Origin: Octopus sinensis
Taxonomy: Eukaryota
DNA length: 64,000 nucleotides
Reading direction: 5' to 3'
Assembly (NCBI RefSeq): GCF_006345805.1
Contig: NC_042998.1
Coordinates: forward strand, 185,318,001 to 185,382,000
Made by a program: the position numbers and the translations under genes
Notes under the pieces: generated by a model
Database searches by the model: none
Told to the model about the DNA's origin: nothing
The model's input: the letters and a program-made list of their open reading frames with translations, nothing else
In this document: piece by piece, positions 470-54,016 of the stretch
Layout: every line of letters begins with the position of its first letter
Position numbering within the stretch: the first letter of the stretch is position 1

Positions 470-580
470 TTCCATATAAGCAGTATGAAGCAGAAAGCGA
501 GAAGGTGCAAGATAATATTTCATATCCTGCATGAAGCATCGAAATGCTGGACAGTTTTCTATTTTCAAGGCCGCTGATGC
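470..580 (-). CDS. DUF885 exon [37 protein letters not shown]
   Basis: Acceptor TTTCCCTTCAG, donor GTAAG, 111 nt, phase 0-0. Confidence 0.92.
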
Positions 581-3500: not shown

Positions 3501-5471
3501 CGATACTGCTAGTTGCTTATAAAATTATTTTTCAAAAAATATCTAAGTTAATATTTAACTTTAAGATACTAATTCTCTCAAATTATCAAAGAATGTTGGA
3601 TTTACTAGAACTTCTCTCCAATCTGAAAATTTTAGATAAAACTAACCTGGGTATGATGACCAGGAATTCCTTCATGTAAACATAAGGCAGGTATTTCATA
3701 TTTAGGGCTACAAAGAAAAAAATTTGAAATATATTTAGAAGAAAATAATCAGACATTTTAAGAAGAATTACACTTTTCTTTTGTTTGACCAGGGAAATGG
3801 AAGTGAATATACAACAGAATAAAATTTTCGAATAGTTTATAGGCAAACATTCATCAATAGATTTAACCAATAAATATATCTTTCTTTTTAAAAAACAATC
3901 ATCCTTCTACAATCAATTAAAAAGTAATTGTTTATTCACCCAATGCATCATCATCACCATCATTTAACGTCTGCTTTCCATGCTAGCATGGGTTGGACGA
4001 TTTTGACTGAGGGCTGGCGAACCAGATGGCTGCACCAGGCTCCAATCTTGATTTGGCAGAGTTTCTACAGCTGGATGCCCTTCCTTATGCCAACCACTCC
4101 GTGAGTGTAGAGGGTGCTTTTTACGTGCCACTGGCATAGGGGCCAGTCAGGCGGTACTGGTAATGACCTCGCTCAAATCTTTTTACACATGCCACCGGCA
4201 CAGGTGCCAGTAAGGTGATGTTGGCAACGATCAAGCTTGAATGGTGCCCTTTTACGTGCCACCGGCACGGAAGCCAGTTGGCTGCTCTGGCAACGATCAC
4301 GCTCAAGTATGATATGATAAATTTATCATACTCAAGCATGAGTATGATAAATAGAGTCAGTTACTTGATCAGTTCTAAACTAGGTTATCTGTTAATTAGT
4401 GATTAGTCATACTGACTCCTGTGAATGATAATTCAGAGACTTACACTTTTCTCAAATTTTTTAGTGGAACAAGTGAAGTAGCAACAAACAAGGGTTAAAC
4501 ATGGCAACAGACTCAGATTTGCTGGTGCATGTCTCAGTGGTTAGAGCGTCAGGCTCCCAATCATGAGAGAGTGAATTTGATTCCTGGACCAGGCTGCGTG
4601 TTGTGTTCTTGAGCAAGACACTTTATTTCACATTGCTCCAGTTCATTCATCTGTAGAAATGAGTTGCGACGTCAATGGTGCCAAGCTGTATCGGCCTTTG
4701 TCTCTCCCTTGAATAACGTCAGTGGCATAGAGACGGGAGGCTGGTATGCATGGACGCCTACTGGTCTTCTATAAACAACATTACCCAGACTTGTGCCTCA
4801 GAGGGGAACTTTCTATGTGCTATCCCATGGTCATTCATGACCAAAACGGGGTTCTTTTACCACTTATACACTAGTGCTTGCTATACAGTAGTTACTCCAT
4901 ACTAATTTACTATTTCACATAATTTATTCTCAAAGATAATAGTAGTAGCAATAACACACTTATATTAGAAAAATATCCAGTAAACTTTCATATGTAACTT
5001 TAAAAATTGAGGAATAAATAGCTGGGTATCAAAAAGAAATTAAGAAACATAAATTCTTACCTGACATCAAATTTACTGGTGTTGATCATATAAGTGCCCA
5101 TTCGGGAGCCATCTGGTGTTCCAGCCAAGTAGAAAGCAGCTGGAGAACTATCCATACCTTCAGGAGTAGGCTTGATTCTTTCAAGGTGAAGAGAAGAATA
5201 GAGGACAAGAAAATAAATTTATATGTGTTGGGTTGCTGTTTTTTTTTTCTCATATTTTTATATGTGATTACTCTTTTACACATTTCAGTCATTTGATTGT
5301 GGCCATGCTGGAGCACCGCCTTTAGCAGAAGAAATCGACTCCAGGACTTATTCTTTGTAAACCTAGTACTTATTCTATCGGTATCTTTTGCCAAACCGTT
5401 AAGTTTTGAGGACATAAACATACCAGCATCGGTTCTTGAGCAATGGTGAGGGGACAAACATAGATACAAAG

Positions 5472-5517
<46 letters not shown>

Positions 5518-8500
5518 CAGCCTTCTTTCAGTTTTCATCTACCAAATCCACTCACAAGGCTTTGGTTGACCCAAGGCTTTAGTAGAAGACACTTGCCTAA
5601 GGTGCCATGCTGTGGGACTGAACCCAGGACCACGTGGTTGGGAAGCAAGCTTCTTACCACACAGCCACGCCTGCACCTATCTATATTGGAAAAGTAACAT
5701 GTTTCTAGTTTTACAAATATTGTTAAATGAGAATACTAATTAAGCAATGTTAATGATGGAGTAGATCTTTATTGAACTCAAAAGCTTATGACTCAGAGGA
5801 GAGAAAATCATCATCATCATCATTATCATTTAATGTCCGCTTTCCATGCTAGCATGGGTTGGACGATTTTGACTGAGGGCTGGCAAACCAGATGGCTGCA
5901 CCTGGCTTCAATTTTGATCTGGTAGAGTTTCAACACCTGAATGCCCTTCCTAACGCCAACCACTCCGAGAGTGTAGTGGGTGTTTTTACGTGCCACCTGC
6001 ACGGGAGCCAGTCAGGCGGTACTGGCAATAACCTTGCTCAAATCTTTTTAGACATGCTACCGGCAGTAAGGCAATGTTGGTAACGATCACGCTCGAATGG
6101 TGCCTTTTATGTGCCACCAGCACAGAAGCCTGTTAGCTGCTCTGGCACCGGATCTTTAATGAACATGCTTTTTTTTTTTCAATGATATCAATGGCATAAG
6201 TGAGAGTTGCTCATATGTCATAGAATTTTAATTGTCATGCCTAGTACCTTGCAAAGTAAATAATATATGCTGACTGAACACTTTGTAGGGACAGTAAAAA
6301 GCTATCAACAATCAAAAGTTACCAAATTTCAAAAATATGTAAGATACACCATTACCAAGAAATTTCAAAATATTTATCCATTTCTTTAAATTTAAGAAGT
6401 AAGCTATGTTTACAAAACTTTGTTGTCCAACCCATCCCAGCGTGAAAAACAGATATGAATGGACAGTATTGACAACGACGGCTCAAAGAAACCTTTGAGT
6501 CTAACCATAATATAATACTGTAAATCCTCGAGTATAATCTGCCCTTGAGTATAATACGCAGGGTATTTTTAGAGGGGTGTACCTCTGAAAAATCTAAACA
6601 TTGTGTATAACACGCACCCCTTCTCTAACTTGAGTCGTGTGTAATTAAGCCAGCAGCACCTAGTCGAACAAACACTTCCACGCATGCGTAATACAATAAT
6701 GGTGATGTTCTTAACTGTTATATGGGAATGTAAATGTTTGCAAATTGTGTTTGTTACATGATATTCTGTGTTCTGAATACTTTTATTTTAATAAATGTTG
6801 CTTACTGCAAGTTATGGATGATCCCTTTATGACTTCATTGCTTTTAGGCTTAGCTTAAGGGATTTTTGCGCCCTACATCACAAAATGCATTTGAATAAAC
6901 ATTGCCAGACAGCAAATAGAGACTCGGACATTGCCTAGAAAATAATTTTCATTTTTAACCTCATATATAGTACGCACTAGGGATTTTGACCTTTAAATTT
7001 TGGGGAAAAAAATGTGGATTATACTCGAGGATTTATGGTATATATTTTTCAGAATTATAGTTTTCTGCTCTATAAATCTGGTAGATAATCTACACCTCAT
7101 CCATTTGATACAACTAGATTACACTTGGTATATTTCCTATGTTTTCTATTACAATTAAACAGAAATGTTTCTTTCTGGCATATTGAAAAATAACCTTTAT
7201 AATATTTTGGCTCATAGCCACAAACAGAATTTGATATTCAAATTTCAAATGACATTCTTTTAAAATGGAAAATAGTGGATGCATATACTAGCTAGTGTTG
7301 AAAATAGCAATCACAATTGCTCACTGACTGACTTATTTCCCATCCTCTCTCTTTCCCTAGCACAACATGCATCCACCCTTCATTTGTTCTATACTCCCTC
7401 TGCCACAAAACTTCATCACTGCTTCCTTGTTGTATCCATACTTTCACTTATTTTCTCAAGAGCTCACGTGACCATGAGCAAATACAATCACCCAGCAACT
7501 TGCTCACCCTTGACCCAGTTTAATATCTTGGATATGACAGCTAAGGAGAGAAAGTGTTGCACCAGTACTAGACTGGTACTCCTTTTTTTAACTCAGTGGG
7601 CTGGAGCAACATAAAACAAAATGCCTTGCTCAAAGATGCAATGCCTGCTTTTATATATAGAACACTCTTTTTTTTTTTAAGAAGTTTAAATAATCTTTAA
7701 AAAATTGGAAAGCAGGAATAATTAAAAGACAAAATTTAGTTCTACTTACATCATTTCTATGTCTGGAAGATCTTTAAAATACTTTGGAATTAGGGGCATG
7801 ATTTCATCCTCACAAATTTTCTTGACATATTCTAATAATTCTTCCTGAAATGAGAAAGAGCCTAGCCTTAGCATCAGAGCTAACACATCAAAGAACAAAT
7901 GTTAAATCACTTATCAAATACTAATGATGATGATGATGATGATAACACTGAAAATGATAATAGAATAACAAGGAGAAGAAAGATGGTGGATATCACATCC
8001 TAACCAACTGCATATCTATAGGTGATATGAGTACCATCAGATAACATACAAATACAACCTAACACAGCGTGCTTCCTCACAAACTTCACTTACCAATAAG
8101 CCTGACTGCTATTACTATATTAGGAACAAAAGCAGCTGAGAAGAGCCCTGGGCTGGCTATATACATACATGTTACATTAAAAATATAAATATTAACAGGT
8201 AACAAAAACATCAATTATAATGAAGTTGATGTTGCTACTCCTTAGTCCAAAGTCAGTCCTGATAGAGTAGCCCAAATTCAATGGTATGACCATCCTGACA
8301 TTTCTCAAGAATAGTAGCCTGGACAATAATATCTACTATATCTATTAGTTTTTTTGTTTTTGTTTTTTTTGTAGGACGGTATGGATCATTTAAAGGAAAT
8401 CTGGCTGCTGTTTTTAGCAAGGTGAAGGACTAGTTAAAGGCTCCATCAGCTCATCAATGAGTAGCATGAGTAGCAATGAGATTATACAATGAGGGTTAGC

Positions 8501-11252
8501 TGAAAAGTTCATAGGCTGACCAAATGAGGTTTATTTTTCAACATAGCTCCATTTGCAGTCCACACACTTCTTCCATTGCCATTGCATTGTTGTAATCCCA
8601 TTAGTGAAGAAGCTTTCATCCTGTTGGTCAAAAAAGGTAACAACAGCAGATATGACATCCTCACTATTGTAATATGCATTCACAGCCAAAAGTTTTCTCA
8701 TGTTGGGGAACGGATGATAATCAGATGGGGCCAAATCAGGATAGTGGGGGAAGTGGTCAACCCATTCAAAGCCAAGTCATGCACAGCAACCAATGTTGCA
8801 GCACACAGCTTGTGTACTGCAGCATTATCTTGATGAAGAAGACACTTTTCATTAGATTTCCTGGGTGTTTGGTCTTAACAGTTTTTCATAAATGTCTCAG
8901 TGAGTTGGCTTTAATACTCTCCATTGAGGGTGTGGCCTTTTGAAGATAGTCAATAAACACAATGTCTTTTGCATCCCCAAAAAACTGACCTCATCAACAT
9001 TGCCATCAACCAGTTGTCATAGATTATTTAAAAAGAGAAAGAACCATAATTTTCAGCCACCATAATTTGCTGAATTTAAAAAAAAAAAATATCTACGGGA
9101 AGTAACTGAAATGGGCCACTGGTTTGAATTTAGATGATTAAATTGTAACAGGTTTCTTCTCAAATTTGATCTTGCAACATTTCTATCTGAATTATTACCA
9201 TGTTTGGTAATTTTTATCACAAATTACAATAAAACACTCATGCAATCATCCAGCATACCAGCTGATATACATTACAGCCAATCACATTTGGCAGCAGACA
9301 ACAAGAAAACCATTTGACTCCTGTGCTTGAGGAGACCTATTGAGTCAAGTACATCAACATCAAAAATCAATGGAAATTGTAGTTGTGATCCCTGTGCCAG
9401 TGGCACGTAAAAAGCACCATCCGAACGTGGCTGATGCCAGTGCCACCTTGACTGACTTTCGTGCCGGTGGCACGTAAAAAGCACCAATCCAATCGTGGCT
9501 GTTGCCAGCCTCGCCTGGCACCTGTGCCGGTGGCACGTAAAAAGCACCCACTACACTCATGGAGTGGTTGGTGTTAGGAAGGGCATCCAGCTGTAGAAAC
9601 ACTGCCAGATTAGATTGGAGCCTGGTGCAGCCTCCTGGCTTCTCAGCCCCCGGTCGGACTGTCCAACCCATGCTAGCATGGAAAATGGATGTTAAACGAT
9701 GATGATGATGATGCATAAATACAAAAGAACATTTTAAAAGTTTATTGTGAGATTGTATTAAACCATGATTTTAGCTCTCACCAGAGATCACTTTAGTCAC
9801 AGTTGGAGGTCAGGTTCACTCATTTGCTAACCAGTGTGTACTGGGTGCACTAGTACCAACACTGGAGGGATTGTCTCATTCATCAATCACTCTAGATGAT
9901 GTTTGTGGGAATGGTGGCTTTCTGCCATGGCCCCAACATATGAAGAGGATATGAAAGGGGTTACTATGTATTTATATGTAATCAACAACAATGCCATGCC
10001 TACCTTTGTTTGACAAAAGAATTCTTTCCTTGTCTTAAGTATTTGACTACATTCTTTCATGTCCAATGGAAGATTCTCAGCCTTGTAGATTTTCATAATT
10101 TCGGATTTGATACGTTCAACTTCCGACAGCCCAAGCTTGTGGATCTCTTCAGGACTCAGGTTGGATGATGTATGGAAACGGACACAAGCATCATAAAACT
10201 CCTTCCCGTTTGGCAAATAACAGGCACCGGGTTCTTGGCGGGAATGTTTCAGGTATACCTTGAGTAAAACATAAACCAACAATTAAGAACCATCACAATT
10301 TTTTTTTTTAATTACAAAATGAAATGGAAATACACTTGCAATACAACCACACTTACATAGACATGCAATAAAATTTTTATATATTTCACATTTATTACCC
10401 AACATAAACTCTCTCTATCTCTCTCTCTCTTTCTCTCTCCGTGAGAGAGAGAGAGCAAGGTAGGCAGGCAATAAAACTGTAGCAGGAAGGTATAGGGTTA
10501 TAAGGCCCAGCTATAATACCTAAATTATAAGAAGTTGGAGAAGAGGACAACAATTGAATGTTTGTGAGAGCTAACCAATGAGAACCACAAACCAGCTTTG
10601 TAGATGGAAAATGCACTGGAACTAAAGAAATAGTAAGTGATACACTACAATGGTGAAATGTACAATAGAGCCATAAAATCTAGGTTTGTCAAGAGCAGGG
10701 TGGAGAGTGAAGAGAGTAAGGAACAGTAGCAGATAGCTAGAAGGAAAGCTATGTGTCAAATAACTTGAGCTTAAGAAGTTTTCCATTCTACTCTCTGTGA
10801 GGACCAGGAGTACAACTGAGGTTTTCTAGACTACAAAGCAATCCATCAGAGTAAGTTAGGGTGTCATTGGCAAAAGTATATGTAGAATAATTGTGGAACA
10901 CATGTCCAGATCAACATTGACAAGAAGCAGAGAAGCAATATTACAAGCAATTTTACAAGCACCTGTTCTTACAAGAAGCAGAGCTATTTATTGTGTAACA
11001 TAAATATGACAGTACCATTTCATTCAAATTATGTTATTGTTGTATACTGAAACTGTACACCCCTCCCAAAAAAGTGGTAGTAGCCAGCCATTATAAATAG
11101 ACTAGTAGCTGGTTGACAAAAAGGTCAGGTCAAAAGCACCTGTATACAACAATATACAACAATAACATAATTTGAATGAAATGGTGCTGTCATGTTTATG
11201 CTACACAATAAATAGCTCTGCTTCTTATAAGAACAGGTGGAATAAAAATCCC

Positions 11253-11283
<31 letters not shown>

Positions 11284-14200: not shown

Positions 14201-16504
14201 GCATTAGGAAGGGCATCCAGCTGTAGAAACTCTGCCAGATCAGACTGGAGCCTGGTGCAGCCATCTGGTTCGCCAGACCTCAGTCAAATTGTCCAACCCA
14301 TGCTAGCATGGAAAGCGGACGTTAAACGATGATGATGATGATTAGCATCTACTATTTTGACTACCATAAAATAAAAATTTAAACTGTGTGATGAATATTC
14401 AAATCCATTCTCACATGCATGTGTACACATACACACACATGTATATATGTGCATACACAATATACTCATGCATCTATACGCACACATGCATATACAACAA
14501 ATTTCAAAGTTTATCATAATAAAAATAATATTCACATTTCCATATAACAAAACTATCACAAGAAAAATATAATTTTTAAATGATTCACATTTTCAAGAAA
14601 TTCTTTTAACTTTTGCAACGCAGGCTTCAATTGATTCTGGAGAATGTCAGATAGCTCTGTTTTGGTTTCTTCCACCCTAGAAAGTAAAATAGAGTAACAC
14701 AAAGTATACATATGCACACATATATATCATTGGTTTCAAGTTTTGGCACAAGGCCAGAAATTTCAGGGGAGGGAGTAAACTGATTATATTCACCCCAGTG
14801 CTTGACAGGTACTTATTTTATGATGAAAGGCAAAGCTGACCTCGGCAGAATTTGAACACAGAACATAAAGACAAATGAAATGCCACCAAGCATTTTACCT
14901 GGTTTGCTAACAATTCTGCCAGCTTGCCTTACACTCTGACTTTTAATCAGAAAATGTGCACTGGCTGATAGGAGTAAGAATAAGTGACAGAATTTCCTTC
15001 ATTCCTTCAGGGTCAATAAATAAAGTGCCAATTAGGTACTAGAGTTGACCCACCATATCTCTCTTTCTCTCTCTCTCTCCCTCTCTTTTTTTTTCTTTAT
15101 TGCCCACAAGGAGCTAAACATAGAGGGGACAAACAAGGACAGACAAACAGATTAAGTCAATTACATTGATCCCAGTGCATAACTGGTACTTAATTTATCG
15201 ACCCCGAAAGGATGAAAGGCAAAGTCGACCTCGGCAGAATTTGAACTCAGAACGTAACGGCAGACGAAATACCGCTAAGCATTTTGCCCGGCATGCTAAC
15301 GTTTCTGCCAGCTCTCCCTCTCTTTCTGAAAGAAATCACCTGTAGTCAGATCTAAAGAGGGATGAACTCTGCCACATTTAAATTGCCCAAATGTCTGAAA
15401 TACTGTATGTTACAACACATCCTTACAACTCCACTAGGAGGTGAGAGTCCAAGACAAGGCAAATAGCCATAGTCAAATGAAATTGTTTTTCCATGCAAGG
15501 ATTTTAAACACTAAATAACAAAACAATTATTCAGTTAATAGAGCAGCAGCTATTAAAAATCCTCACACATTACAGCAACTCAAACAGCTAAGTTTGCAGA
15601 AAAAGTCAACTCATGCAAGTAGGGAAAGAAATATGGACACAAAATATTAAAATCAGTAATAAGCTTTTAAGCATTTCAACTATACTAAGTACATCACAAA
15701 GTTACAACTGGCCAAGACAATAGGATACTCAGCTGAAGCATCAGTAGTTGGTGTCCCATCACTGTTCTGTATCAACAAACAGTCAATTTATCTGTAAACA
15801 ACTGCTATGGTAGGTAAGAATAGGTAACTTTTTGCTGTTATACTCTGAAGGAACATTGTTTAGATGATGCTTCATGAGTTTATAGTGTTAGGTTCAAGTG
15901 TATAAGTCAACTGAAGTGAGCTGATCTGTTCAAACTGACTTGCCTAAGATACACTTTGAAGATGAAGTGAGGAAGCAGTCTTCATTTGTATTCCAATAAC
16001 TGAATACACTGTGGAACACACTGCCAATTAAAAAATCATGCTATGAGAATCATAGAACTGCTGTAAGTTCTTGGTAAAATAGTTTGTCATCTAGCTGGAA
16101 CAGTTTTATTTCCCTTTTAGCATAAATACTTTTGCAAACAACATTCAGAATGACACAGAATGAAAGAAGGCTGGATCTTTGAAATAGAGGTACTCCTCAT
16201 TTTTGCCAGGTGAGCGGACTGGAGCAACATGAAATAAAATGTCTCACTCAAGGACACAACACACAGTTGGGAATTGAACTTACAACTAAGCTACATGCTT
16301 TCACAATCATCATCATCATCATTTAACGTCTATTTTCCATGCTAGTATGGGTTGGACAGTTCAACTGGGGTCTGGGAAGCCAGTAGGCTGTGCCAGGCCC
16401 AGTCTGATCTGGCAGTGTTTCTACAGCTGGATGCCCTTCCTAACACCAACCACTCCGTGAGTGTAGTGGGTGCTTTTTACGTGCCACCTGCACAGTAAAA
16501 ATAA

Positions 16505-16552
<48 letters not shown>

Positions 16553-19500
16553 CCGTTGCCAGCCTCGCCTGGCACGTAAAAAGCACCCACTACACTCACG
16601 GAGTGGTTGGCATTAGGAAGGGCATCAAGCTGTAGAAACACTGTCAGATCAGACTGGAGCCTGGACATTAAACGATGATGATGATGATGAACATAAATTC
16701 AAAAACATCTATGTGGTTAAGAAGCTTGCTTGGCAATCATGTGGTTTCAGATTCAGCCCCACCACACAGCACCTTGAGCTTCTTCTACTATGGCCTTAAG
16801 CCAGTCAATGCCTTCAAAGTGACTTTGGTAGATGGAAACTGTGTGGAAGCAGATGTGCGTGGGTTTTTGCATTTGTCAGCCGCCACCACTTGGCAACTGG
16901 TGTTGGTTTATTTACATTCTCATATCTCGCCAGTTTGACAAAAGAGACCATTAGAATAAGTAATCAGACTTAAAATATAAGCACTTGTTCAATTAAGTCT
17001 TTTGAGGTGGTACCCCAGCATGGCCACAGTTCAATGACTGAATCAAGTAAAAGATAAAAGATATATATCAAACTATGGATAATTCTCATATCATGGTGAA
17101 GTGCCTAGAAACTAGTAGAGTATCTGACTATGAACAAATACTCAGTTGCAAAATATATATATCCACTAACAATTCATGAAGTAGTATCCAGCTGCAAAAG
17201 CACACTCTAATTGTCCACAGATATAACAAACATATAAAATAAACACCATAGCAAAAACAAAGAGGAGAATTATAAACTCCAGGATAATACTTACATTCCT
17301 AACAGTTTCTCATTAGTTGGTGTCTTTTTAAATGGGTTTAAAAACACTGAAGTTCCACTGTCTATTTTCTTTATTAAGTCTTCTAGTTGTTGAGGAACTT
17401 CTTTCTAGAAAATAAGTAAATTATAAATATAAAGAAAGGAAAACAAATAAAAAAAATTTTTAATACTAATATTTGTTGCCAGTGCTGCTGGACTGACTCC
17501 TGTGCATTGGCACATAAAAACACCATTCATGGTCGTTGCCAGTTCCGCCAGATTGGCCCTCGTGCCGGTGGCATGTAAAAGCACCCACTACACTCTCGGA
17601 GCGGTTGGCATTAGGAAGGGCATCCAGCTGTAGAAACTCTGCCAGATCAGATTAGAGCCTGGCGCAGCCATCTGGTTCGCCAGTCCTCAGTCAAATCGTC
17701 CAACCCATGCTAGTATGGAAAGCGGACGTTAAACGATGATGATGATGATGATCTGGTTCCACATGAAATCTTGAATGGTCAGAGTTTTTGATAATGTTGG
17801 TAATATTCTAGTGAATTATGATTGAGTTGTTTTTTTGCATCAGATATAGTGGTCTGGGTTTGATTGCTAAATATTCCTGCTACAACCCTGAGTAAACATT
17901 GCCTTGAGTACACAGACATGCTATTCTGAAGTGAGGATTCTTTAGTTTTCACAAGATGGAAGATAGCCTCACTAACGCTGATGCCATGATAAAATGCACC
18001 CAGTACACTCTGTAATGAAGTTAGTAAATGAGTGCAGACAAAGTAGAGTGGTGAGGACTTTTTAGTGTTACTGAGAACATGACAACCTCTCTAGTGCTGA
18101 TGCCACAATAAATGGTTGGTATTACGAAGGGAAACCAGCCATAGAAACTGAACTAAAAACGACATGTATGTAAGTGATAACTGCGAATAACTTGGAATGT
18201 GATGACATATCTAACTCATAATGTTTCTTTCTGCACAGAAAGCAGGCAGAAAATAATGATGACACTGATGATGTAATAAATGAAAATAGATTAGATGTAA
18301 CATACCACTGACTCAATAGGACAAATCATCTTCTTCTCAATTCCCTCCAGCAAAATGGCTTCTATATCACCCAACTGAAACAAAATTATTATAGAATTTA
18401 ATATAGAAGCAACTAGATGCAATCAGCTTTAGAACTTTTCCCAGATATTCAGCTTCAAATCTTTAAAATCTTTTAAAAACATTATTGTATTATTTAGCAT
18501 CTAATTACTGGTTTCAAGTAATAAGCATTAGACAACATACTTTAAACAATCTAAATTTGGAATTCAAATCTTGCTCAAGTAAAGTTTACACTTGACCCTA
18601 TGGAGGTTATAAAATAAATAGTAATTCTACTGAAAGAAAAGTTTACAATAGAAGTGGTACGAAACTCTAACATTAGGTAAAAATGAAAGAAATGTGTAAC
18701 ATTATGTGTCAGCCATTTTTACAAAATTTCAACAAATTGGCAATAAAAAGCCATTCTAATTTTACCTGTCAAACAACTTTTTTTTTATTCCAAGGATTTA
18801 GATCTGCATTTCATCCACTGGGTTAATTAAAACAAGAAGAATATGCCCATCTAACTCTTTAATAGACACTGCTGTTCAAAATAAGATCAGCAATTTCTAC
18901 AGAAAATGCTACCATAGATGTGTAGAAATGGATATTTACATAAATCAATGCAGTGTTCTCAGTTTGAATCAGCCATAAAGCTAAACTGGTAAAGACAAGG
19001 AAATAAAGTCAGCTGTAACAGAGTATGCTAAGGCATTCCATCCATGACCAACTTGTCCTTCATTCAGACAATATCATCCAACATGCCCCTACTTTATAAG
19101 GCAGTAGGCTGTAATTTGAAGGAGATTAGCTGTTATTTCTAACAGGTCAAGGGACCACATAGAAGGTGCTTCACTGGCTTTAGGGATTAACATATATTGC
19201 ACAGAGTAATTTTAATATCCCTAATGAGCTTTGATTTTAATAAATTCAGTACATTGAACAAAAGACCTGAACCTAATCATTCAACTTGCTAAAATCAGCA
19301 ACTGTATATCTCCCTCATATCTATTTCTTTATTACCCACAAGGGGCTAAACACAGAGAGGACAAACAGGGACAGACATAGGTATTAAGTCGATTACATCG
19401 ACCCCAGTGCGTAACTGGTACTTAATTTATCGACCCCGAAAGGAGGAAAGGCAAAGTCGACCTCGGCGGAATTTGAACTCACAACGTAACGACAGACGAA

Positions 19501-22500
19501 ATACAGCTACGCATTTCGCCCGGCGTGCTAACGTTTCTGCCAGCTCGCCGCCTTATCTCCCTTATATCATACCCTACCACCCTAGAAAAGGGAGATACTT
19601 TGGAAATATGATCCTAGATACATTACACATGAGGAAAACAAACAAGACAGTCATGTTTGGACTGTTACAGATCACTACTGTTTGATCAGAGCTGACTTGG
19701 AGCCAATAAGAATAGCAACAAATCCAGCAAAACCCTACACCATTACAAATCTACTACTGAAACTGCACAAAAGACTGTAACTTATCTGAACAGCAGATAT
19801 GAAATTCAAAATGAAAATTATGTTAATAAACGCACAAAAGTTACTAACTCTACTGTTTATATAGAGCAGATTCTTTCAGTTTTCACAGAAAGCCAGATAT
19901 TAAGCACAACACAACAGAATGTTAACACCAATTTTATAAAATATTTTGGAAACTGGTTACTTAATGGAAAGTTATTAATATTATTGGGGGACTGGTTTTA
20001 GTGTTCTGTCAAAATTATTTTGACCCTTTCTTTGTATAAGTGCTCAATCTGTTGGGCATTAGCATTCAATCTTGCTAATAAAGTAGATCTCTGATAACTT
20101 GCCAGTGGTACGTAAGAGAACCATCCGAACATGGCCATTGCCAGCGCCACCCCGACTGGCCTTGTGCTGGTGGCACGTAAAAAGCACCATCCGATCGTGG
20201 CTGTTGCCAGCCTCGTCTGGCACGTAAAAAGCACCCACTACACTCTCAGAGTGGTTGGCGTTAGGAAAGGCATCTAGCTGTAGAAACATTTCCAGATTAG
20301 ACTAGGCCTGGTGCAGCCTTCTGGCTTCCCAGACCCCAGTTGAACCGTCCAACCCATGCCAGCATGGAAAGCGGATGCTAAACGATGATGATGATGATGA
20401 TGAACTTGCCATATGGTAACACAGCTATGATTAGTTCTATACATGGACTTGTTATTGAATGTTTGCTTTGATATTTCTCCCTTTATTCACAAGTCATTGA
20501 ATCCATGCTCAAGATGTGCTTATGTCATCATTATCAGCATTTCTTTATCAATAAAAAAAATAGATAACAAACTTAAAATTTACAGTAGTTTACTTATTGC
20601 TAGATATATTCCAGATTTGCTTTTGTTTTTTTTTTGTTTTTTTACTTCTATTATATATCGGCCAAATCAGCAGAACAGCTATTCATCCAATTCTATCTTT
20701 TATCATCAAATATACACTTTTCAATTTTCTGTTATCTATTGTATATTACATTCCAATCTCTCTAGGCCTACTGTTATCTAGATTAAGAAACCAAGATAAT
20801 TATTGCAAGCCATGAATGAACTTGCAATAATTGCTCATACACACTGCATTCATCTCCTATGAGGTTAGTTTAACTTACCTGCTTTACAAAACTCTTCATA
20901 CAGGCAACATATTTCTTGTAGTCAGCTTCTTCCTTAAACTGCATCCAATCAATACGGAACATAAAATTTATGTGTGGATTTTCTAGGAAACTGATAGGAA
21001 AGTAGTAGCTAGAAGATAAGGAAAAATAGTAATTAACAAACAAGTTGCAATACTAAAGGATTGTAAGCCCAAGTTTCAAATTTGGTGTACTGAGAAATTA
21101 TTCATCATTAGAGAAGGAACTGGAAAAATGATTTCCAAAGTTTATCACTCATGAATTGAAACTCAACCATTGTCAAAGGAATTAACCATTTTTTGTTGAT
21201 CAAATGGCTATCACAGCAGTAGTTGAGTTAAAGTTGCTGAAATTAATTCACTGTGAGACAGAGAAGAGAGATATGTACATCAGGTGATTCAGAGTAACAG
21301 TGTTTATCAGAGAGAGAAGGATAGACAGACAGAGATTGAAAAGCTAATAAAGAAATAAAGAGTAACTTACCCCATGAAGTCTAAACCTTTAAGAGTGCTC
21401 TCAAGATCTTCTTTCAGCAAACGAAGATTTATTTTGGAGTCATGATCAAGATCTGACATGTCTATAGCAGAAGCTTCTTTCAAAAATCCTTCTATGATTG
21501 GCTGTAACCATATTAAAAAGGAAAAGAAACAAAAGAACAGTAACAATTTATAAAGGTTTAAAGAAGAAAGTTTAGAATCAATATGATATTATTTACAGTA
21601 AAATTCAAACCAGAACATCAATCTCTAAGCTAAGTGCTGTTAGCAAAGAATTTTGCAACACTAGAAGTTTTTCAACAAAGAATTTTCTATGCTAGATTAT
21701 CTTCCTTGTTTTGTTATTTGAAGTAAAAACACTCAATCATAATATTTTTGTTTTCATCATCATTATCGTCATCATTTAACATCCTCCTTCCATGCTGGCA
21801 GGGGTTTTACAGGAACTGACATGTCAGAAGACTGTGCCAAGCTCTAAATCCTTTCAGACTTGTGGGCAAATTGATGCTTAATTTGAACTTCTGTAGGTTG
21901 ACATTTGAAGAAAACTGGACACTAAACTCTGTTTGTGAAGACCTGTTGAGGCAAGTGAAATTGAAATCAAATTCGATGACTGGCATCCATGCTAGTGGAG
22001 CACTACGAGTACCATATGAGTGAGATTGCTGCCAGAGCAACAAGCTGACCTCAGTGCCGATGCATGCAAAAAGCACCATTTGAGTGTGATCGTTACCTGC
22101 GTTGCCTTGCTGGCACTTGTGCTGGTGGCACATGAAAAAACATTCGAGCGAGGTCATTGCCAGTGCCACTGGACTGGCTCCTGTGCAGGTGGCACATAAA
22201 AAGCACCATTTGAGCGTGGCCGTTGCCAGTACTGCCTGACTGGCCCTTGTGCCGGTGGCACGTAAAAACACCCACTACACTCTTGGAGTGGTTGGCATCC
22301 AGCTGTAGAAACTCTGCCAGATCGGATTAGAGTCTGGTGCAGCCATCTGGTTCGCCAGCCCTCAGTCAAATCATCCAACCCATGCTAGCATGGAAAACAG
22401 ACGTTAAACGATGATGATAATGATGATGATGATAGAAGGGCATTCCAGAGGGCAGCAGCTTTAATTGAGAATTGATTGACAAAGGAATTATAACAGGATC

Positions 22501-25398
22501 TAGGGTAAGATGCAGAAGCTACAATGTGAGGAGAAGCAAGTAAGACAGATGAGTCTGGATGGAAGTGTATGCAACTTGCTGGTTCAGAATAGTGAAAACA
22601 GTTGTTGTAGCAGAGAGAAGAAACTTTTTTTTTTTTTTTGTAAGTACTACTGCTTGTTTTATTTTATCAGTTTGATCTGCAAGAAGAGGTTACACCCATA
22701 GTCTGCACAAGCTCTCCAAGATTGGTGAAATTTATATGGTTACTGTTCCTATTTAAAAAGTTAATAGCTGCCAGATAACATATTCAGAGAAGAATTTTTC
22801 AACAGACTAAGGCTCTGGGGAGAAAGGACTGAGAATAGTGATTAATCTGTGACCTTGAGATATGGAACACAATACAAGCCTCAAGAACAAATCCCACGGG
22901 TGAGTAATATGAACGAATAGGTCTCTAGTAGATCTGGCTTTACCACAACTGATTCTCAAAACAACACTCCAGTTGTATCTCCATGTAAGACTATATTATG
23001 TTGCTGTACACATTTAACCTGCTTGATGGTGGGATATTAATCCAACTTCATTGGTTATAGAAGCAGCATGCTTCTGTAAGTGGAAAGTTGAAGTATAAAG
23101 TAGAAAGTTTGAATACTTGGGTTCAGTGAGTTGGTTATAATGAAAAGTCAAGTGCAGGAGTCGCTGTGTGTTAAGTAGCTTGTTTACCAACCACATGGTT
23201 CCAGGTTCAGTCCCACTGCATGGCACCTTGGGCAAGTGTCTTCTACTATAGCCTCGGGCCGACCAAAGCCTTGTGAGTGGATTTGGTAGACGGAAACTGA
23301 AAGAAGCCCGTCGTATATATGTATATATATATATATATATGCGTGCGTGTGTTTGTGTGTCTGTGTTTTTCCCCCTAGCATTGCTTGACAACCGATGCTG
23401 GTGTGTTTATGTCCCCATTACTTAGCGGTTCGGCAAAAGAGACCGATAGAATAAGTACTGGGCTTACAAAAGAATAAGTCCTGGGGTCGATTTACTCGAT
23501 TAAAAGGCGGTGCTCCAGCATGTCCGCAGTCAAATGACTGAAACAAGTAAAAGAGTAAAAGAGTAAAGAGTATGAGAGACAGAGAAATAGATGAAAACAG
23601 AGGGTTTGGGTCAAGGCAGTGTGCAGCCAACACAGTCTAACAGAGTGGTGTTAGAAGAGACACAATGTAAACATGGTACAAAGTTAGGCTTAAGAACACC
23701 AGTAATCAGATAGTCACAACCCTATATTTGAGACCTGAATATATAATAATAATAATAATAATTGTGTACAGTGCTCAGGTGCACTACAACTCATCTAAAG
23801 TGTATATATAATCAGGTGTAGTTTCGACGGATTTCGGGAAGCATGAGGGCCTTAAAGGATGCAGTGTCATGGCAGTCAGCAACTGACGCAGGCAGTTTAT
23901 TCCACGCTTCAGCAACCCTGAGCGTGAAAAAATGTTTCCGAAAGTCATGGGAGCTGTGCTGTTTTCTGACTTTGTAGGCATGTCCACGTGTGTTAGACAC
24001 ATGGAGATCAAAAAGGTGTTCAGTGTTGTTGTTGGTGAGGTGGTTGATAACCTTGTGGGTGTTTACCAAGTCCGTCGCTAGACGCCGGAGCTTCAGTGAA
24101 TCCATGCCCAGGGAAACAAGGCGCTCAGAATATGGTAGGTGTCTGATGGAGGGTATGTGTTTGGTTGCACGTCTCTGGACAGATTCCAGGAGGTCAATGT
24201 TCTGAGCAAGATAGGGATTCCAAACTGATGATGCGAATTCCAAGTGTGGTCGTACCATAGCTGTATACAGTTTTAAATAGATGGCTGGAGAGCGGCTAAC
24301 AAAAGTCTTGCTGAGTGATGCCAAGACACCCTCGGCCTTCTTGACAATTTTAGAGATATGCTTTGTCCAACGCAAATGTTGAATATCTGCTAGATATGTT
24401 GAATATCTGCTAGATACAATTACTTAGTAGCTTAAACTGTTATTTGCTGTAAAGGTAAAACTAAAATTGAATATAGTTTTCACAATGTTGGAGATATAAA
24501 ACTGTCAAAGGCAATAAATCTTTGCACAGATAAAAATGATGATAAATGTTCATGAAAATTAAGAGTATAACGTGATATTTTTCTTTAAAATCAATAATAT
24601 TTTGTTTTGGAAAAGCTTTTTAAACATTACCAAGGTGTAACAGCCTAATTTGAATAAAATTTTATCCTTAATCCTTTCATTACAGAATTCCTGCTAAAAT
24701 ATACTGCCTTTGTTTTAAATAATTTTGGTAATAATGAAGAATTTAGTAAAATAACTTTATCAGAATTAAACTGGAGTTTAGTACATAAATTAACATGAAA
24801 TTTTTACAGAAGGTTTTAATTTAGTTCATTTTAAAATAGGAAGTTTTCATCATAGATCCATGGGCAGTTTGGTATCAAAAGGGTTAATGATGGAAAAACC
24901 AGTACCTTTTGCTTCTTGTAAGCGTCAACACTTAAGTCATCTACTCTATCATTATACTCCATTTTCCCACAAAAAGCAGCAAAATCAGGGCTGTCATCAA
25001 GACGCCACTGCCAAAACCTTTCATATAAGTCTTCAAGTTTTTCACATTTACCCCTGAAAAATATAAAGTGATTATTGATAACAGGCAAAATGTCGACATA
25101 GTGCTCTTAATAATATGCACAATAATTACAAAACAGCAACAACAATAATAATCCTTTCTACTATATGCACAAGGCCTGAAATTTTTTGGGGAGGGTGGGG
25201 GGGGGGTAATTGATTACATCGACCCCAGTGTTATACTGGTACTTAATTTATTGACCCCACAAAAGGATGAAAGGTAAAGTCAACCTCAGCAGAAACTGAA
25301 CTCGGAACGTAAAGACAGAAAAATGCTAAGCATTTTGCCAGGTATACTAACAATTCTGCCAGCTTGCTGCCTTTGCTGCTGCGGCGGCGACGACAACA

Positions 25399-25429
<31 letters not shown>

Positions 25430-33286: not shown

Positions 33287-33334
<48 letters not shown>

Positions 33335-35768
33335 ACATGTATATATATACATATATGTATACATGTATATATATATACATGTATATATATACATGTATAT
33401 ATATATATATTTGTTGTGCAAATGGCTAAACTCGCAATATGACCATTCCGAAATATAACTATATATAATACATATATATAGATGTATATATATAGATGTA
33501 TATATATAGATGTATATGTATACATGTATATGTATAGATGTATTTATATACATGTAGATATATATGTATACATGTATATGTGTAGATGTATATATATATA
33601 TAGGCACAAGAGTGGCTGTGTGGTAAGTAGCTTCCTTACCAACCACATGGTTCCGAGTTCATTCCCACTGCGTGGCACCTTGGGCAAGTGTCTTCTACTA
33701 TAGCCTTGGTCCAACCAAAGCCTTGTGAGTGGATTTGGTAGAGAGAAACTGAAAGAAGCCCATCGTATATATGTATATATATACATCAGTATAGTGGTCA
33801 TTTGCAAACTCCAGAGGTGACACTTTCATTTCTCCTTAGCCCTCGCATCACACAGTTGTTAATGTTTATTTGAGTTGGGTCACGCCCTTCCAATTGCTGT
33901 ACCTGTCACCTGTATGGTGAGGAATCGTACATTGGAAGTGATAACAACTAGGGTAAGGTAACTGACTGCTTATTGTAATCATTCGTCTTCTGGTTTCCTG
34001 TAGTTTTGCTCTCCTTTACAAACCCAGTGAACATACATATATTTCCTATTTCAAAGAAATTCAAACAATAGATATAAGACCCAAGTTAAAAAGATTCTCA
34101 ACAATTCAACTTCTCTGGTTGACATTAAGACACTCACCCCCAATAGGGGCCTTAACTCCCACATTTTAGAGCTCCATAACCTCCATTTTTCAGGAGCAAA
34201 ATCCTTTTAACAGGTTCTATAAGACTGGAATTTTGGAATCTGTGCATAAAAATCAGTAGTATGGGATACATGTGTCATGATTACAATTTTTTTAGGGTGT
34301 GTAAAGAGGGAAAGAACCCTCATCTGCAATTTTGAGGAAATTCAAATCATAGGTATTCCAGTTCATTACAGAAAAGTCTAATTCTTGAACTGCATGTAAC
34401 ACGGACAACGCCGGGTATCCCTGCTAGTTTTATATAAACACCTTTCAAACGGCATGCCTTTCTATTCACACTCAAAATATTGATTATTCATGGGGAAGCC
34501 TTGAAAATACATTGTTCGACCAGGAATGAGTGCGGTACTATTTAAGAAGAGTGGTCCCGGTGCGCGCATTCGCGCACCCGCGCAAGCTAGTCGTGACTAG
34601 TTCGATCCTTACTTTGTATTTTTCTGTTTTACTTTGTTTAAAAAAATTATTTACTTCGTGTTTTTGTGTCATATTTACTTTGTTTAAAAATTTTTTTTAC
34701 TTTGTGTAAACAAATTATTTATTTTGTGTTTTATTTACTTTGTTTTAATTTTTTTTTTTTTTTGTGTTTTATTTACTGTGTTAGGTGGTCGTTGTAGGAT
34801 CGACTAGTCACGACTAGCTAGCGCGGATGCGCGAGTGCGCGCACCGGGACCACTCTTCTTAGATAGTACCATGAGTGCGACCTAACTACTTGAAACAATG
34901 TCGTTCGGTTAGTTTTCATACAAGCCATCTCACCGGCAACCTAGCGACTTCATAAGTTTCTTTTGGAGACTGCAAGACTATACCCATGTCCCTGATGACA
35001 CAGAAGACTGTATACCGGTTCTTGATGTCGTTCACCGGTAACTCTCGTTGGTGTATTTTTTATACTGCAAAACATTCGATGGGGGGGAAAAAATCCAACC
35101 TTCTGAATTTTCTGAAAGACCGGGTAATAAAGTAAACAATAACCAAACAACTGCGTTAAACGAATAAGAATCTAGTCAGAGGTAACCAAACATTCAGTTT
35201 TCAGTTTACTTGCGTCAGGTTTTGCTTTCATTAATTAATTATATAGTGGGGCCTTTCTAAACAATTCCTGATAATGTGGAAATTTTCGGGAATAAATTAT
35301 CACGAAGACGACTTATTGCTTCGTCCTGGGGTCGATTTCTATTTATATTCCTAAAAACATGTATGCACCGTAGTTTCCTGCAAGCGTATTTGCTATGTTG
35401 CCTTCAATACTGATATCGTGTTAAAAAGAAAAAGTATTCTATACACATTCAGTCATCCATGCAAATATAATTACTTTATAACATCTGTTTTGATTTATTT
35501 TTAAACAGCTAATTGTGGATCCATTTAAAAAAACTGAGAACACTGTCGGTCGAAATTCCATTTATACTTATGGGAAACATCACTCGAAGAAAATAATAAA
35601 CACGATGTAAATGAAAAACGAAAGTTAATTGAATGTATAATGAAAGTACAAATCTTTAAATTAAAACAATCGGTTTGATATTTCATTTGGCTAAGGCAAA
35701 TAATTAAAATGAAAATATATAATTAGAATTTAAAAAAATAAATGAAATACTACTCACATCTTGGACAT
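470..35768 (-). CDS. DUF885-family protein (putative zincin-like metalloprotein), spliced gene, 3'-partial; 12 coding exons, 442 codons in window
   Basis: Exons 35758-35768 (candidate), 24906-25053, 21371-21501, 20879-21008, 18306-18374, 17295-17404, 14589-14676, 10004-10258, 7750-7844, 5061-5177, 3647-3707 and 470-580 join in frame with GT-AG ends. Recognisable family motifs: [86 protein letters not shown](GW). Family call is from motif recall. Confidence 0.9.
856..1226 (-). mobile_element. tRNA-derived SINE
   Basis: Minus-strand head TGGCCCAGTGGTTAGGGCAGC...GGTTTTGATTCCC has A-box/B-box-like motifs and is followed by a non-tRNA body. Confidence 0.7.
2141..2455 (-). mobile_element. SINE family 1 ((GAT)n tail, internal GTGCC..GGCAC modules)
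   Basis: Shared body GGTTGGCGTTAGGAAGGGCATCCAGCTGTAGAAAC...CATGCTAGCATGGAAA and (GAT)n tail; more than 20 copies in the window. Confidence 0.9.
3122..3512 (+). mobile_element. Non-autonomous Helitron, family A
   Basis: 5' TC, 3' CTAG preceded by a GAGCAACGCCGGG hairpin, inserted between A and T without TSD; further copies at 31593 and 57260. Confidence 0.85.
3647..3707 (-). CDS. DUF885 exon (S)[20 protein letters not shown]
   Basis: Acceptor TTTCTTTGTAG, donor GTTAG, 61 nt; contains HExxPGHH. Confidence 0.93.
3946..4305 (-). mobile_element. SINE family 1
   Basis: Same body and tail, with 3-4 internal modules. Confidence 0.9.
4525..4860 (+). mobile_element. tRNA-derived SINE with V/CORE-like central domain
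   Basis: CTCAGTGGTTAGAGCG head followed by GTGTTCTTGAGCAAGACACTT; related copy at 63250-63650. Confidence 0.65.
5061..5177 (-). CDS. DUF885 exon [38 protein letters not shown]
   Basis: Acceptor after a long pyrimidine tract ending AAG, donor GTAAG, 117 nt, phase 2-2. Confidence 0.92.
5270..5679 (-). mobile_element. SINE family 2 (tRNA head, TTGGGCAAGTGTCTT core, internal TA/TG microsatellite, (GTAAAAGA)n tail)
   Basis: Full-length match to copies at 12359, 23152, 31603 and 45484. Confidence 0.9.
5808..6150 (-). mobile_element. SINE family 1
   Basis: Shared body and tail. Confidence 0.9.
6518..7038. mobile_element. Tc2/pogo-like non-autonomous DNA transposon (MITE)
   Basis: TIRs C(T/C)(G/A)TAAATCCTCGAGTATAA with TA on both flanks; opposite-orientation copy at 42119-42630. 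Confidence 0.85.
7750..7844 (-). CDS. DUF885 exon [31 protein letters not shown]
   Basis: Acceptor CTCATTTCAG, donor GTAAG, 95 nt. Confidence 0.9.
8490..9005 (-). pseudogene. Mariner transposase remnant with right TIR
   Basis: [13 protein letters not shown]...FFTNGI...WKKCVD..SYVEK and upstream [14 protein letters not shown]-like segments with frameshifts; TIR-like GAGGGTTAGCTGAAAAGTTC. Confidence 0.85.
9290..9713 (+). mobile_element. SINE family 1, subfamily B, long copy
   Basis: Shared body, 3 modules, (GAT)n tail. Confidence 0.9.
10004..10258 (-). CDS. DUF885 exon [21 protein letters not shown]...EFFCQTK
   Basis: 255 nt inside ORF 9887..10282; acceptor TTTTACTCAAG, donor GTAGGC. Confidence 0.92.
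11960..12190 (-). mobile_element. SINE family 2, 3' half
   Basis: Matches the 3' half of 12359-12765 in reverse orientation. Confidence 0.85.
12337..13000. repeat. Long inverted repeat interrupted by a SINE
   Basis: 12770-12855 is the reverse complement of 12892-12978 (2 mismatches, 1 indel); the arm continues at 12337-12360 versus 12977-13000. Confidence 0.9.
12359..12765 (+). mobile_element. SINE family 2, full length
   Basis: Head GGCGCAGGAGTGGCTGTGTGGTAAG through an A-rich tail. Confidence 0.92.
13012..13165 (-). mobile_element. SINE family 2, 5' half
   Basis: Reverse match to 12359-12535. Confidence 0.85.
13350..13698 (+). mobile_element. SINE family 1
   Basis: 3 modules, body and tail. 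Confidence 0.9.
13940..14342 (+). mobile_element. SINE family 1
   Basis: 3-4 modules, body and tail. Confidence 0.9.
14589..14676 (-). CDS. DUF885 exon [29 protein letters not shown]
   Basis: Acceptor TTTACTTTCTAG, donor GTGAAT, 88 nt. Confidence 0.88.
15090..15312 (-). mobile_element. SINE family 3 (tRNA head, Meta-domain-like GCCTTTCATCCTTTCGGGGTCGATAAAT core)
   Basis: Near full length, flanked by a CTCTCCCTCTCTTT duplication; an older copy lies at 14745-14935. Confidence 0.88.
16307..16690. mobile_element. Two inverted family-1 SINEs around a TA/TG microsatellite
   Basis: 16307-16490 on minus, 16551-16690 on plus. Confidence 0.9.
17295..17404 (-). CDS. DUF885 exon [36 protein letters not shown]
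   Basis: Acceptor TTTTCTAG, donor GTAAG, 110 nt. Confidence 0.88.
17477..17751 (+). mobile_element. SINE family 1
   Basis: Body and tail. Confidence 0.9.
18306..18374 (-). CDS. DUF885 exon [23 protein letters not shown]
   Basis: Acceptor TTTTGTTTCAG, donor GTATG, 69 nt, phase 0-0. Confidence 0.87.
19321..19554 (-). mobile_element. SINE family 3, full length
   Basis: Flanked by a TATCTCCCT(C/T)ATAT duplication. Confidence 0.92.
20098..20402 (+). mobile_element. SINE family 1, subfamily B
   Basis: Body and tail. Confidence 0.9.
20879..21008 (-). CDS. DUF885 exon [43 protein letters not shown]
   Basis: Acceptor TCTTCTAG, donor GTAAG, 130 nt. Confidence 0.9.
21371..21501 (-). CDS. DUF885 exon [43 protein letters not shown]
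   Basis: Acceptor TTACAG, donor GTAAG, 131 nt. Confidence 0.88.
21930..22433 (+). mobile_element. SINE family 1, long copy with 4 modules and 5' extension
   Basis: Shares its 5' extension with 50785-51340. Confidence 0.9.
23152..23570 (+). mobile_element. SINE family 2, full length
   Basis: Head, core and tail. Confidence 0.92.
23742..24375 (-). mobile_element. CR1/L2-group LINE, 5'-truncated copy
   Basis: 187-aa ORF nearly identical to the C-terminus of 36618..38768; same 3' UTR and (ATT)n tail. Confidence 0.95.
24906..25053 (-). CDS. DUF885 exon [49 protein letters not shown]
   Basis: Inside ORF 24831..25088; acceptor TTTTTCAG, donor GTACT, 148 nt, starts in phase 2. Confidence 0.92.
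25913..26064 (+). mobile_element. SINE family 1, truncated, with inverted 5' junction
   Basis: Body and tail; foldback at the 5' end. Confidence 0.85.
26866..27140 (-). mobile_element. SINE family 1, subfamily B
   Basis: Body and tail remnant. Confidence 0.88.
28370..28550 (-). mobile_element. SINE family 1
   Basis: Body and tail. Confidence 0.88.
29160..29452 (+). mobile_element. SINE family 1
   Basis: Body and tail. Confidence 0.88.
29470..29705 (+). mobile_element. SINE family 3
   Basis: AAGGCGGTGAGCCGGCAGAAAC head through AAAGAAATAG tail. Confidence 0.9.
31593..32395 (+). mobile_element. Helitron family A containing a nested family-2 SINE (31603-32007)
   Basis: TC start at 31593; the SINE splits the TCTTTATATATAAAAG terminus; CTAG end at 32395. 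Confidence 0.82.
32712..34427 (+). mobile_element. Helitron family B with nested hairpin, microsatellite and SINE
   Basis: TCTATATATATAAAG start, CAACGCCGGG...CTAG end; removing it restores the host repeat unit. Confidence 0.78.
33190..33600. repeat. About 410-bp (TA)/(TACA)/(TATG) compound microsatellite
   Basis: Read directly from the sequence. Confidence 0.95.
34534..34870. mobile_element. MITE with ~75-bp GC-rich TIRs and 8-bp TSD ATGAGTGC (Merlin-like)
   Basis: GGTACTATTTAAGAAGAGTGGTCCCGG... at the left and ...CCGGGACCACTCTTCTTAGATAGTACC at the right; ATGAGTGC at 34526-34533 and 34871-34878. Confidence 0.9.
34934..34953 (-). CDS. Candidate alternative first coding exon of the DUF885 gene (MKSLGC+CG)
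   Basis: ATG AAG TCG CTA GGT TGC CG followed by GTGAGA donor; phase 2 matches the 25053 acceptor. Confidence 0.45.
35758..35768 (-). CDS. Candidate first coding exon of the DUF885 gene (MSK+AT)
   Basis: ATG TCC AAG AT followed by GTGAGT donor; phase 2 matches the 25053 acceptor; lies in non-repetitive sequence. Confidence 0.55.
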
Positions 35769-38990: not shown

Positions 38991-39179
38991 AATAAGTACC
39001 AGTTACGCACCAGGGTCGATATAATCGACTTAATCCCTTTGTCTGTCTTTCTTTGTCCTCTCTGTGTTTAGCCCCTTGTGGGTAGTAAAGAAATAGGTAT
39101 TTCGTCTGCCTTTACGTTGAGTTCAAATTTGCTTTTCATCCTTTCGGGGTCAATAAATTAAGTACCAGATGAAGGCAAG

Positions 39180-48194: not shown

Positions 48195-48332
48195 TTATTC
48201 AGAATCAGATTCTTCATTGTCTGTAGAATAGTCAGAATCTCCACTAGCCTCCTCTTCCTTCTTATCATCGTCATCATCAGAAATTTCCCATTGTGGGTGG
48301 TCCTCAATTATCTTTGCTTGTTTTACGTCAAG
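48195..48332 (-). CDS. SEC63: SEC63 last coding exon LDVKQAKIIEDHPQWEIS...SDSE*
   Basis: Acceptor TATTCAG, TAA at 48195-48197. Confidence 0.93.
   Translation of the reverse strand, partial: LDVKQAKIIEDHPQWEISDDDDDKKEEEASGDSDYSTDNEESDSE

Positions 48333-53946: not shown

Positions 53947-54016
<70 letters not shown>

Follow-up and report, generated by a model that had tools for sequence, protein, structure and literature searches.

The stretch of Octopus sinensis DNA analysed here, referred to below as the window, is 64,000 nucleotides long (contig NC_042998.1, positions 185,318,001 to 185,382,000), and the parts of it that we sampled are an exact match to chromosome CM016860.1 of assembly GCA_006345805.1. 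Stop-free segments resembling DUF885 proteins are dispersed over its minus strand, from about 25 kb to 0.5 kb. When a crude join of these exons was used to search for homologues, the best match was LOC115232424 (P0001), an Octopus sinensis protein of 581 residues that RefSeq lists as an "uncharacterized protein", and the window encodes its residues 1-442 with 100% identity. Exact spliced mapping of this protein gave 12 minus-strand coding exons running from position 35768 down to 470. Joined, they make 1326 nt, or 442 codons without a stop, and every intron of the gene in the window has GT...AG borders. The junctions themselves are supported by their exact correspondence to the RefSeq model and by conservation among orthologues.

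The first-pass annotation had described an intron-rich animal DUF885 gene of 12 exons spread over about 35 kb, with 442 open codons. The gene is genuine, as the spliced mapping and a Pfam match of the full protein attest, and the coordinates and counts are exact. That only two of the exons are visible to an open reading frame track is also correct: at the default 60-aa threshold, a scan detects exon 8 (ORF 9887-10282) and exon 2 (ORF 24831-25088) and no others. The gene is already annotated in RefSeq, and the family to which it belongs is already known. The exons are as follows.

Coding exon 1, 35758..35768, minus strand: ATG TCC AAG AT/gt, residues 1-3 and 2 nt of codon 4
Intron 1, between exons 1 and 2, inside codon 4, minus strand: 10,704 nt
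Coding exon 2, 24906..25053, minus strand: 148 nt, residues 4-53, with the conserved W-x-W-R ... SPxFA block
Coding exon 3, 21371..21501, minus strand: 131 nt, residues 54-96, equal in length in Elysia, Branchiostoma and Limulus
Coding exon 4, 20879..21008, minus strand: 130 nt, residues 97-140
Coding exon 5, 18306..18374, minus strand: 69 nt, residues 141-163
Coding exon 6, 17295..17404, minus strand: 110 nt, residues 164-199
Coding exon 7, 14589..14676, minus strand: 88 nt, residues 200-229
Coding exon 8, 10004..10258, minus strand: 255 nt, residues 230-314, matched in amphioxus and Limulus by a pair of exons (168+87 nt)
Coding exon 9, 7750..7844, minus strand: 95 nt, residues 315-345
Coding exon 10, 5061..5177, minus strand: 117 nt, residues 346-384, with a predicted beta-sheet just ahead of the putative metal-site helices
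Coding exon 11, 3647..3707, minus strand: 61 nt, residues 385-405, with the invariant H396-E397-G-I-P400-G401-H402-H403 at 3676-3653
Coding exon 12, 470..580, minus strand: 111 nt, residues 406-442, with the nearly invariant E442 (472-470), then the splice donor

In total the gene has 17 coding exons, and the window holds the first 12, the 5' three-quarters. Exon 12 closes on a splice donor, GGAA/gtaagt, with no stop codon; exons 13-17 (residues 443-581, 139 aa) lie outside the window, starting 1.7 kb beyond its position 1. The motif HEGIPGHH (3676-3653) and residue E442 fall within the window, and the blocks GWGLYxE, RLVVDTGIH and RYITWPGQAxxYKxG, about a third of the family's conserved motifs and invariant residues, fall in the missing exons. 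The first-pass statement that all family motifs are present is therefore wrong for the window. In Argonauta hians the orthologue likewise has 17 exons, with a structure that is the same as in Octopus, and SEC63 is again its neighbour.

The window has a GC content of 35-43%, is dense in interspersed repeats and contains the reverse transcriptase ORF of a LINE-type element, and from these features it can be recognized as animal genomic DNA. Upstream of the DUF885 gene, the same strand carries the 3' exons of a SEC63 homologue. The order and orientation of the two genes match those in Argonauta hians, in which the SEC63 homologue has DnaJ and Sec63 domains, so local synteny is conserved across octopods. 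Between the DUF885 start codon and an intact LINE-type ORF upstream of it there are about 850 bp. A short interspersed repeat, with internal tandem units of ~58-67 bp, is found in both orientations in most introns; its recurrent translation ('...[18 protein letters not shown]...') is the source of many spurious ORFs. A second interspersed family has (TA/TATG)n-like microsatellite flanks and the translation '...[36 protein letters not shown]...', and one of its copies adjoins a 400-bp (TA)n tract.

SEC63 homologue, 3' exons, 48198-60210, minus strand
SEC63 exon-like matches, minus strand, at about 60210-60013, 58239-58050, 54776-54650, 53512-53290, 51473-51372, 50664-50550 and 48350-48198
LINE-type retrotransposon ORF, 36618-38768, plus strand: intact, 716 aa, Pfam RVT_1 with E=1.5e-37
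LINE fragment, 23815-24423, minus strand, in intron 2: 5'-truncated copy of the 3' end
LINE fragment, 62199-62621, plus strand: 5'-truncated copy of the 3' end
Short interspersed repeat, examples at 2200-2400, 3960-4140, 5830-6120, 9275-9770, 13365-13700, 13980-14330, 16345-16700, 17470-17800, 20060-20480, 21810-22520, 26900-27330, 28390-28560, 29090-29440 and 44023-44448
Second repeat family, examples at 5086-5700, 12340-12780, 23017-23640, 31440-31990, 33547-33830, 38796-39071 and 45249-45900
(TA)n tract, 33190-33602: 400 bp

Family membership and predicted fold

A comparison of the reconstructed protein with Pfam had been proposed in the first-pass annotation, and the DUF885 profile (PF05960) was matched: the full 581-aa protein scored 473.7 bits against a cut-off of 32.4 and spanned profile positions 1-532 of 532, and the crude join of the part encoded in the window covered positions 1-376 with E=1.6e-63. 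The four family motifs, HExxPGHH, EGWxxYxE, RxxRLVVDTGxH and ExxRYxxxPGQAxxYKxG, are all found in the 581-aa octopus protein. Eighteen of its residues are invariant in an alignment of 86 animal and bacterial sequences, namely H396, E397, P400, G401, H402, H403, Q405, G443, W444, Y447, E449, R474, R477, D481, E512, R515, Y526 and K527. The dN/dS ratio between Octopus and Argonauta hians is 0.13, with dS (~1.07) near saturation, and judged by this comparison of coding sequences the protein is under purifying selection.

An AlphaFold model built with the 86-sequence alignment has a mean pLDDT of 95.2 and is mostly helical; residues 345-377 form a three-stranded sheet. The sheet is followed by a helix (387-397) that ends in H396-E397, a break at Pro-Gly, a helix that starts from H402-H403, and a further helix that carries E442 and E449. 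The model superimposes on the crystal structure of a Colwellia DUF885 protein (PDB 3o0y) with a TM-score of 0.90 and an rmsd of 2.6-3.0 Å, and on 3iuk with a TM-score of 0.77. With the structures known for PF05960/IPR010281, which are 3o0y, 3iuk (Arthrobacter) and 3u24 (Shewanella), the octopus protein has in common the fold and all of the invariant residues. Most bacterial members are secreted or are lipoproteins and have a leader at the N-terminus; the octopus protein differs from them in being leaderless and in belonging to a separate clade made up wholly of eukaryotes.

Distribution and descent of the gene

To collect homologues, we searched 1.84 billion representatives exhaustively with HMMER and added name look-ups and two profile searches. 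The HMMER search returned 13,219 representative matches, and named homologues with 38-45% identity come from ichthyosporeans and chytrids as well as from many animal phyla. The molluscs, with three classes represented, include Haliotis, Bradybaena, Physella, Nucella, Batillaria, Aplysia, Patella, Ruditapes, Ylistrum, Solemya and Potamilus, and the other lophotrochozoans are the annelid Capitella and the nemerteans Lineus and Tubulanus. The ecdysozoans include Priapulus, the crustacean Trinorchestia, Limulus, Tachypleus, spiders and ticks; the deuterostomes, two species of Branchiostoma; and the cnidarians, Acropora, Nematostella, Dendronephthya and Actinostola. Outside the animals there are chytrid fungi (as tandem proteins of 2-3 domains), diatoms, and EukProt entries with the prefixes Nk52 and Sdes, which we take to be the ichthyosporeans Chromosphaera perkinsii and Sphaerothecum destruens, respectively. 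A basal relative, P0140, lies on a contig that also carries UTP25, Sec1, proteasome and exportin genes, from which we concluded that it is eukaryotic. A much narrower distribution was suggested by a word-indexed search with the crude 394-aa exon join, in which cephalopods and Elysia alone stood above bacteria of ~32% identity; this was set aside as an artefact of limited sensitivity, since the HMMER and profile searches gave many phyla. No vertebrate, insect or nematode appears among the named matches of the homologue searches, and this absence suggests that the gene was lost in those three groups. Such a loss would explain why the family went unstudied.

Several homologues have two or three complete DUF885 domains fused in one protein: those of the chytrids (P0122, P0124, P0125, P0131, P0134 and P0136), those of the bivalves Solemya and Potamilus (P0414 and P0416), and, among bacteria, those of Amycolatopsis and a Steroidobacteraceae genome (P0121 and P0130). 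In the tree, the two Amycolatopsis domains that were included pair together. Four chytrids entered with two domains each, and in three of them the domains likewise pair; the tandem domains of Boothiomyces and of the Steroidobacteraceae genome do not. From this pairing within proteins, most of the domain duplications look independent. One further sequence, P0132, comes from a metagenome contig in ENA (L008, gene 10001-11752) and has its place in the tree close to the sequences of cnidarians and bilaterians. One uninterrupted ORF, beside a reverse-transcriptase gene on a gene-poor contig, encodes it, and it could be a retrocopy or derive from an intron-poor eukaryote.

Trees were calculated with FastTree from 252 sequences and twice with IQ-TREE (LG+C20 PMSF); all are unrooted, and they agree. 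The IQ-TREE analysis has one clade of 67 sequences (SH-aLRT 100) that takes in all 31 named animal sequences together with chytrids, ichthyosporeans, diatoms and 19 sequences without a name, and every named member is a eukaryote. None of the 19 named bacterial sequences belongs to it, nor does a Heimdallarchaeon. The base of the clade is a polytomy, and the branching inside it tracks the species tree, with support values of 94 for Bilateria, 99 for a mollusc "A" clade (scallop, cephalopods and gastropods), 99 each for cephalopods and for gastropods, and 98 for ecdysozoans. Neither in the FastTree nor in the IQ-TREE trees are animal sequences nested among bacteria.

Exact gene structures were compared among Octopus, Argonauta, Elysia, Branchiostoma, Limulus, Dendronephthya and Actinostola; Capitella, with 23 kb of Ns at the locus, and the chytrid Globomyces, with an intron-poor model, were set apart from this comparison. 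A series of exon lengths (131, 130, 69, ~110, ~88, 95, 117, 61, 111, 65, 72, 103 and 67) recurs in Elysia and Branchiostoma and, minus the last (67), in Limulus. For twelve introns, the alignment column and the phase are identical throughout the seven species, the two cnidarians included, and three more either agree to within 1-2 columns beside gaps or are present in six of the seven. The octopus gene thus has 15 of its 16 introns in common with the sea slug Elysia, with amphioxus and with the two cnidarians, and 14 with the horseshoe crab Limulus. Only intron 1 is specific to cephalopods. An old intron at octopus residue 286, found in the cnidarians, amphioxus and Limulus, is gone in molluscs, and its loss accounts for the 255-nt exon 8, which is 168+87 nt. 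As read from these gene structures, the shared positions mean that 15 of the 16 octopus introns are older than the split between cnidarians and bilaterians.

Intron conservation is the most decisive evidence on the origin of the gene. Taken with the trees, the comparison of structures identifies octopus DUF885 as an old eukaryotic and metazoan gene with vertical descent and not as a bacterial import. The first-pass annotation had left two scenarios standing, an ancient horizontal acquisition and an ancestral gene lost in model animals, and had named a phylogeny and intron positions as the checks. Distribution, tree and introns all favour the second, in which the part about loss is based on the named matches only. 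The main value of the present analysis is this correction: the suspected import from bacteria into cephalopods has turned out to be an ordinary metazoan gene with vertical inheritance. The near-complete conservation of introns between cnidarians and octopus also makes the Pfam label "bacterial protein" a poor guide to origin.

Among other origins, the one that survives best places a single, very ancient bacterial transfer in a stem or early eukaryote, with vertical descent from then on, as opposed to descent from the first eukaryotic common ancestor. With an arbitrary root at Dyella, the eukaryote clade lies inside bacterial diversity; the sole Asgard sequence (Heimdallarchaeota LC_2) groups with Planctomycetota, away from the eukaryotes; the distribution of DUF885 among eukaryotes looks patchy; and a Dictyostelium DUF885 gene has been named as a transfer candidate (PMC3188802). 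However, with an unrooted tree and a basal polytomy, the monophyly of the eukaryotes (SH-aLRT 100) fits both scenarios equally, and we consider such an early transfer unlikely, though it keeps appreciable weight.

The idea that cephalopods or molluscs acquired the gene from bacteria long ago and then added introns and domesticated it is very improbable, and our comparisons refute it under the condition that the first-pass annotation had itself set. It would be in keeping with the "bacterial" name of the family in Pfam, with the 13,219 representative matches, most of which are probably prokaryotic, and with the result of the word-indexed search. It is contradicted by the named homologues in many animal phyla, ichthyosporeans and chytrids, by a species-like tree in which animals never fall inside bacterial branches, and by the 15 of 16 introns held in common, by codon and phase, with amphioxus and cnidarians. 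Bacterial contamination of the assembly and a decaying pseudogene, for which nothing speaks except the family name, were rejected and merit practically no credence, given eleven spliceosomal introns in the window that are rich in octopus repeats and LINE fragments, SEC63 exons upstream on the same strand, an intact open frame, a dN/dS of 0.13 and the retention of all conserved residues. The reading that we carry forward is the vertically inherited metazoan gene.

The leaderless N-terminus

The octopus protein begins with 17 residues ahead of the conserved W-x-W-R block ([21 protein letters not shown]...), and the maximum Kyte-Doolittle mean over 9 residues in this N-terminus is 0.64, compared to 2.2-3.4 in leader-bearing homologues. 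There is an in-frame stop 20 codons 5' of the ATG, with no Met intervening. The absence of a hydrophobic leader noted in the first-pass annotation is thus borne out. By the same hydropathy heuristic, we infer that the protein is cytosolic, and the earlier description of it as a "cytosolic version" is reasonable to that extent; as a novelty of cephalopods it does not stand, since a leaderless start is shared by many lineages. It is also seen in other cephalopods, gastropods, a scallop, amphioxus, cnidarians and ichthyosporeans, and sequence comparisons suggest that it is probably the ancestral eukaryotic state.

Ecdysozoan and nemertean copies do have hydrophobic leaders, and so does "B", a second paralogue of lophotrochozoans that is ~630 aa long and was seen in Ruditapes, Patella and Haliotis rubra. 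The octopus gene, in contrast to this leader-bearing paralogue, belongs to the leaderless "A" lineage with gastropods, scallop, amphioxus and cnidarians. DUF885 proteins have been reported from spider venom (PMC7682650) and from a snail venom gland (PMC11359391). Both the spider protein (Physocyclus, 599 aa) and the snail transcript (Raphitoma, 606 aa) have the same domain and lie in the same eukaryote clade as the octopus protein, but unlike it they have a leader. The leader-bearing animal proteins (~600-640 aa) are presumably secreted, which fits these reports of DUF885 proteins in venom.

A candidate metal site and its chemistry

The fold and the conserved residues point to a working model in which the octopus protein would be a cytosolic hydrolase dependent on a metal, probably zinc; a peptidase or an amidase is the likeliest kind. 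The putative metal or catalytic site would be formed by H396 and E397 at the end of one helix and by H402 and H403 at the start of the next, and would be completed by E442 and E449 on the helix that follows. Such an arrangement, HE-x4-HH, would be non-canonical relative to HExxH. Three published observations bear on it: Pfam places DUF885 in its Peptidase_MA clan (PMC12572635), zinc sites are reported in crystal structures of IPR010281 (PMC4539273), and folds resembling M32 carboxypeptidases were obtained with FFAS for the spider venom protein (PMC7682650).

The layout resembles that of the gluzincins, metallopeptidases of clan MA(E) that include M32 carboxypeptidase Taq and M3 oligopeptidase A. 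These are mostly helical, as is the octopus model, and in both a small three-stranded sheet appears to be followed by a His-Glu helix and then by more conserved Glu on a later helix. The octopus HE-x4-HH differs from the gluzincin HExxH in being split over two predicted helices by Pro-Gly. The continuous-helix HExxH zinc motif is not found in the octopus protein, whose model breaks the helix after HE. Similarity to the gluzincins was undetectable here by Foldseek, HMM or hhalign. Foldseek searches of the PDB with the whole model returned only the uncharacterised DUF885 structures 3o0y, 3iuk and 3u24, and a separately predicted C-terminal half (residues 336-581) again returned only these three. 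The DUF885 profile HMM gave only chance matches beyond DUF885 among PDB sequences at E<=10; hhalign gave a probability of 0.5% for the DUF885 profile against Escherichia coli oligopeptidase A (family M3); and neither Pfam at E<=10 nor NCBIfam gave any further domain relation. A search of the accessible literature on the family found no functional characterisation. Some bacterial homologues carry the label "prolyl oligopeptidase" in IMG, which we set aside as automatic and unsupported.

The lack of detectable similarity to any characterised hydrolase, and of a published activity for the family, would be expected if the protein were not an enzyme at all but a helical binding or scaffold protein with a merely structural metal site. 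We regard this as distinctly unlikely, since it leaves aside a set of His, Glu, Arg, Asp, Tyr and Lys residues that is invariant from bacteria to animals, as is typical of a catalytic site, the gluzincin-like placement of H-E and then more His and Glu on neighbouring helices, and the assignment to the Peptidase_MA clan. On balance, a leaderless, probably cytosolic, metal-dependent hydrolase, acting most likely on peptides or amides, is the reading of the octopus protein that we put slightly ahead of even, with its chemistry presumed. That the locus as a whole is best explained by an intact, constrained, leaderless, single-domain DUF885 gene, inherited vertically and coding for what we infer to be a cytosolic metal hydrolase, is held with considerable confidence.

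The first-pass annotation suggested that the gene may represent an undescribed metalloenzyme activity in cephalopods; with homologues in many phyla the gene is pan-metazoan, and cephalopods are too narrow a frame for it. A wider proposal, tentative and somewhat short of even in our estimation, is that the eukaryotic DUF885 clade may be an ancient family of metal-dependent hydrolases with an unusual HE-x4-HH/Glu site, a leaderless and probably cytosolic ancestor, and secreted derivatives in the venom glands of spiders and snails. DUF885 is widespread and strongly conserved, and its structures have been solved without a function having been assigned; across animal phyla it occurs in leaderless and in presumably secreted, venom-associated forms. 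Work toward de-orphaning enzyme families now has gene models, a paralogue structure and invariant residues to mutate. If the proposal is true, the search for the substrate could conveniently take the octopus gene as its representative from animals.
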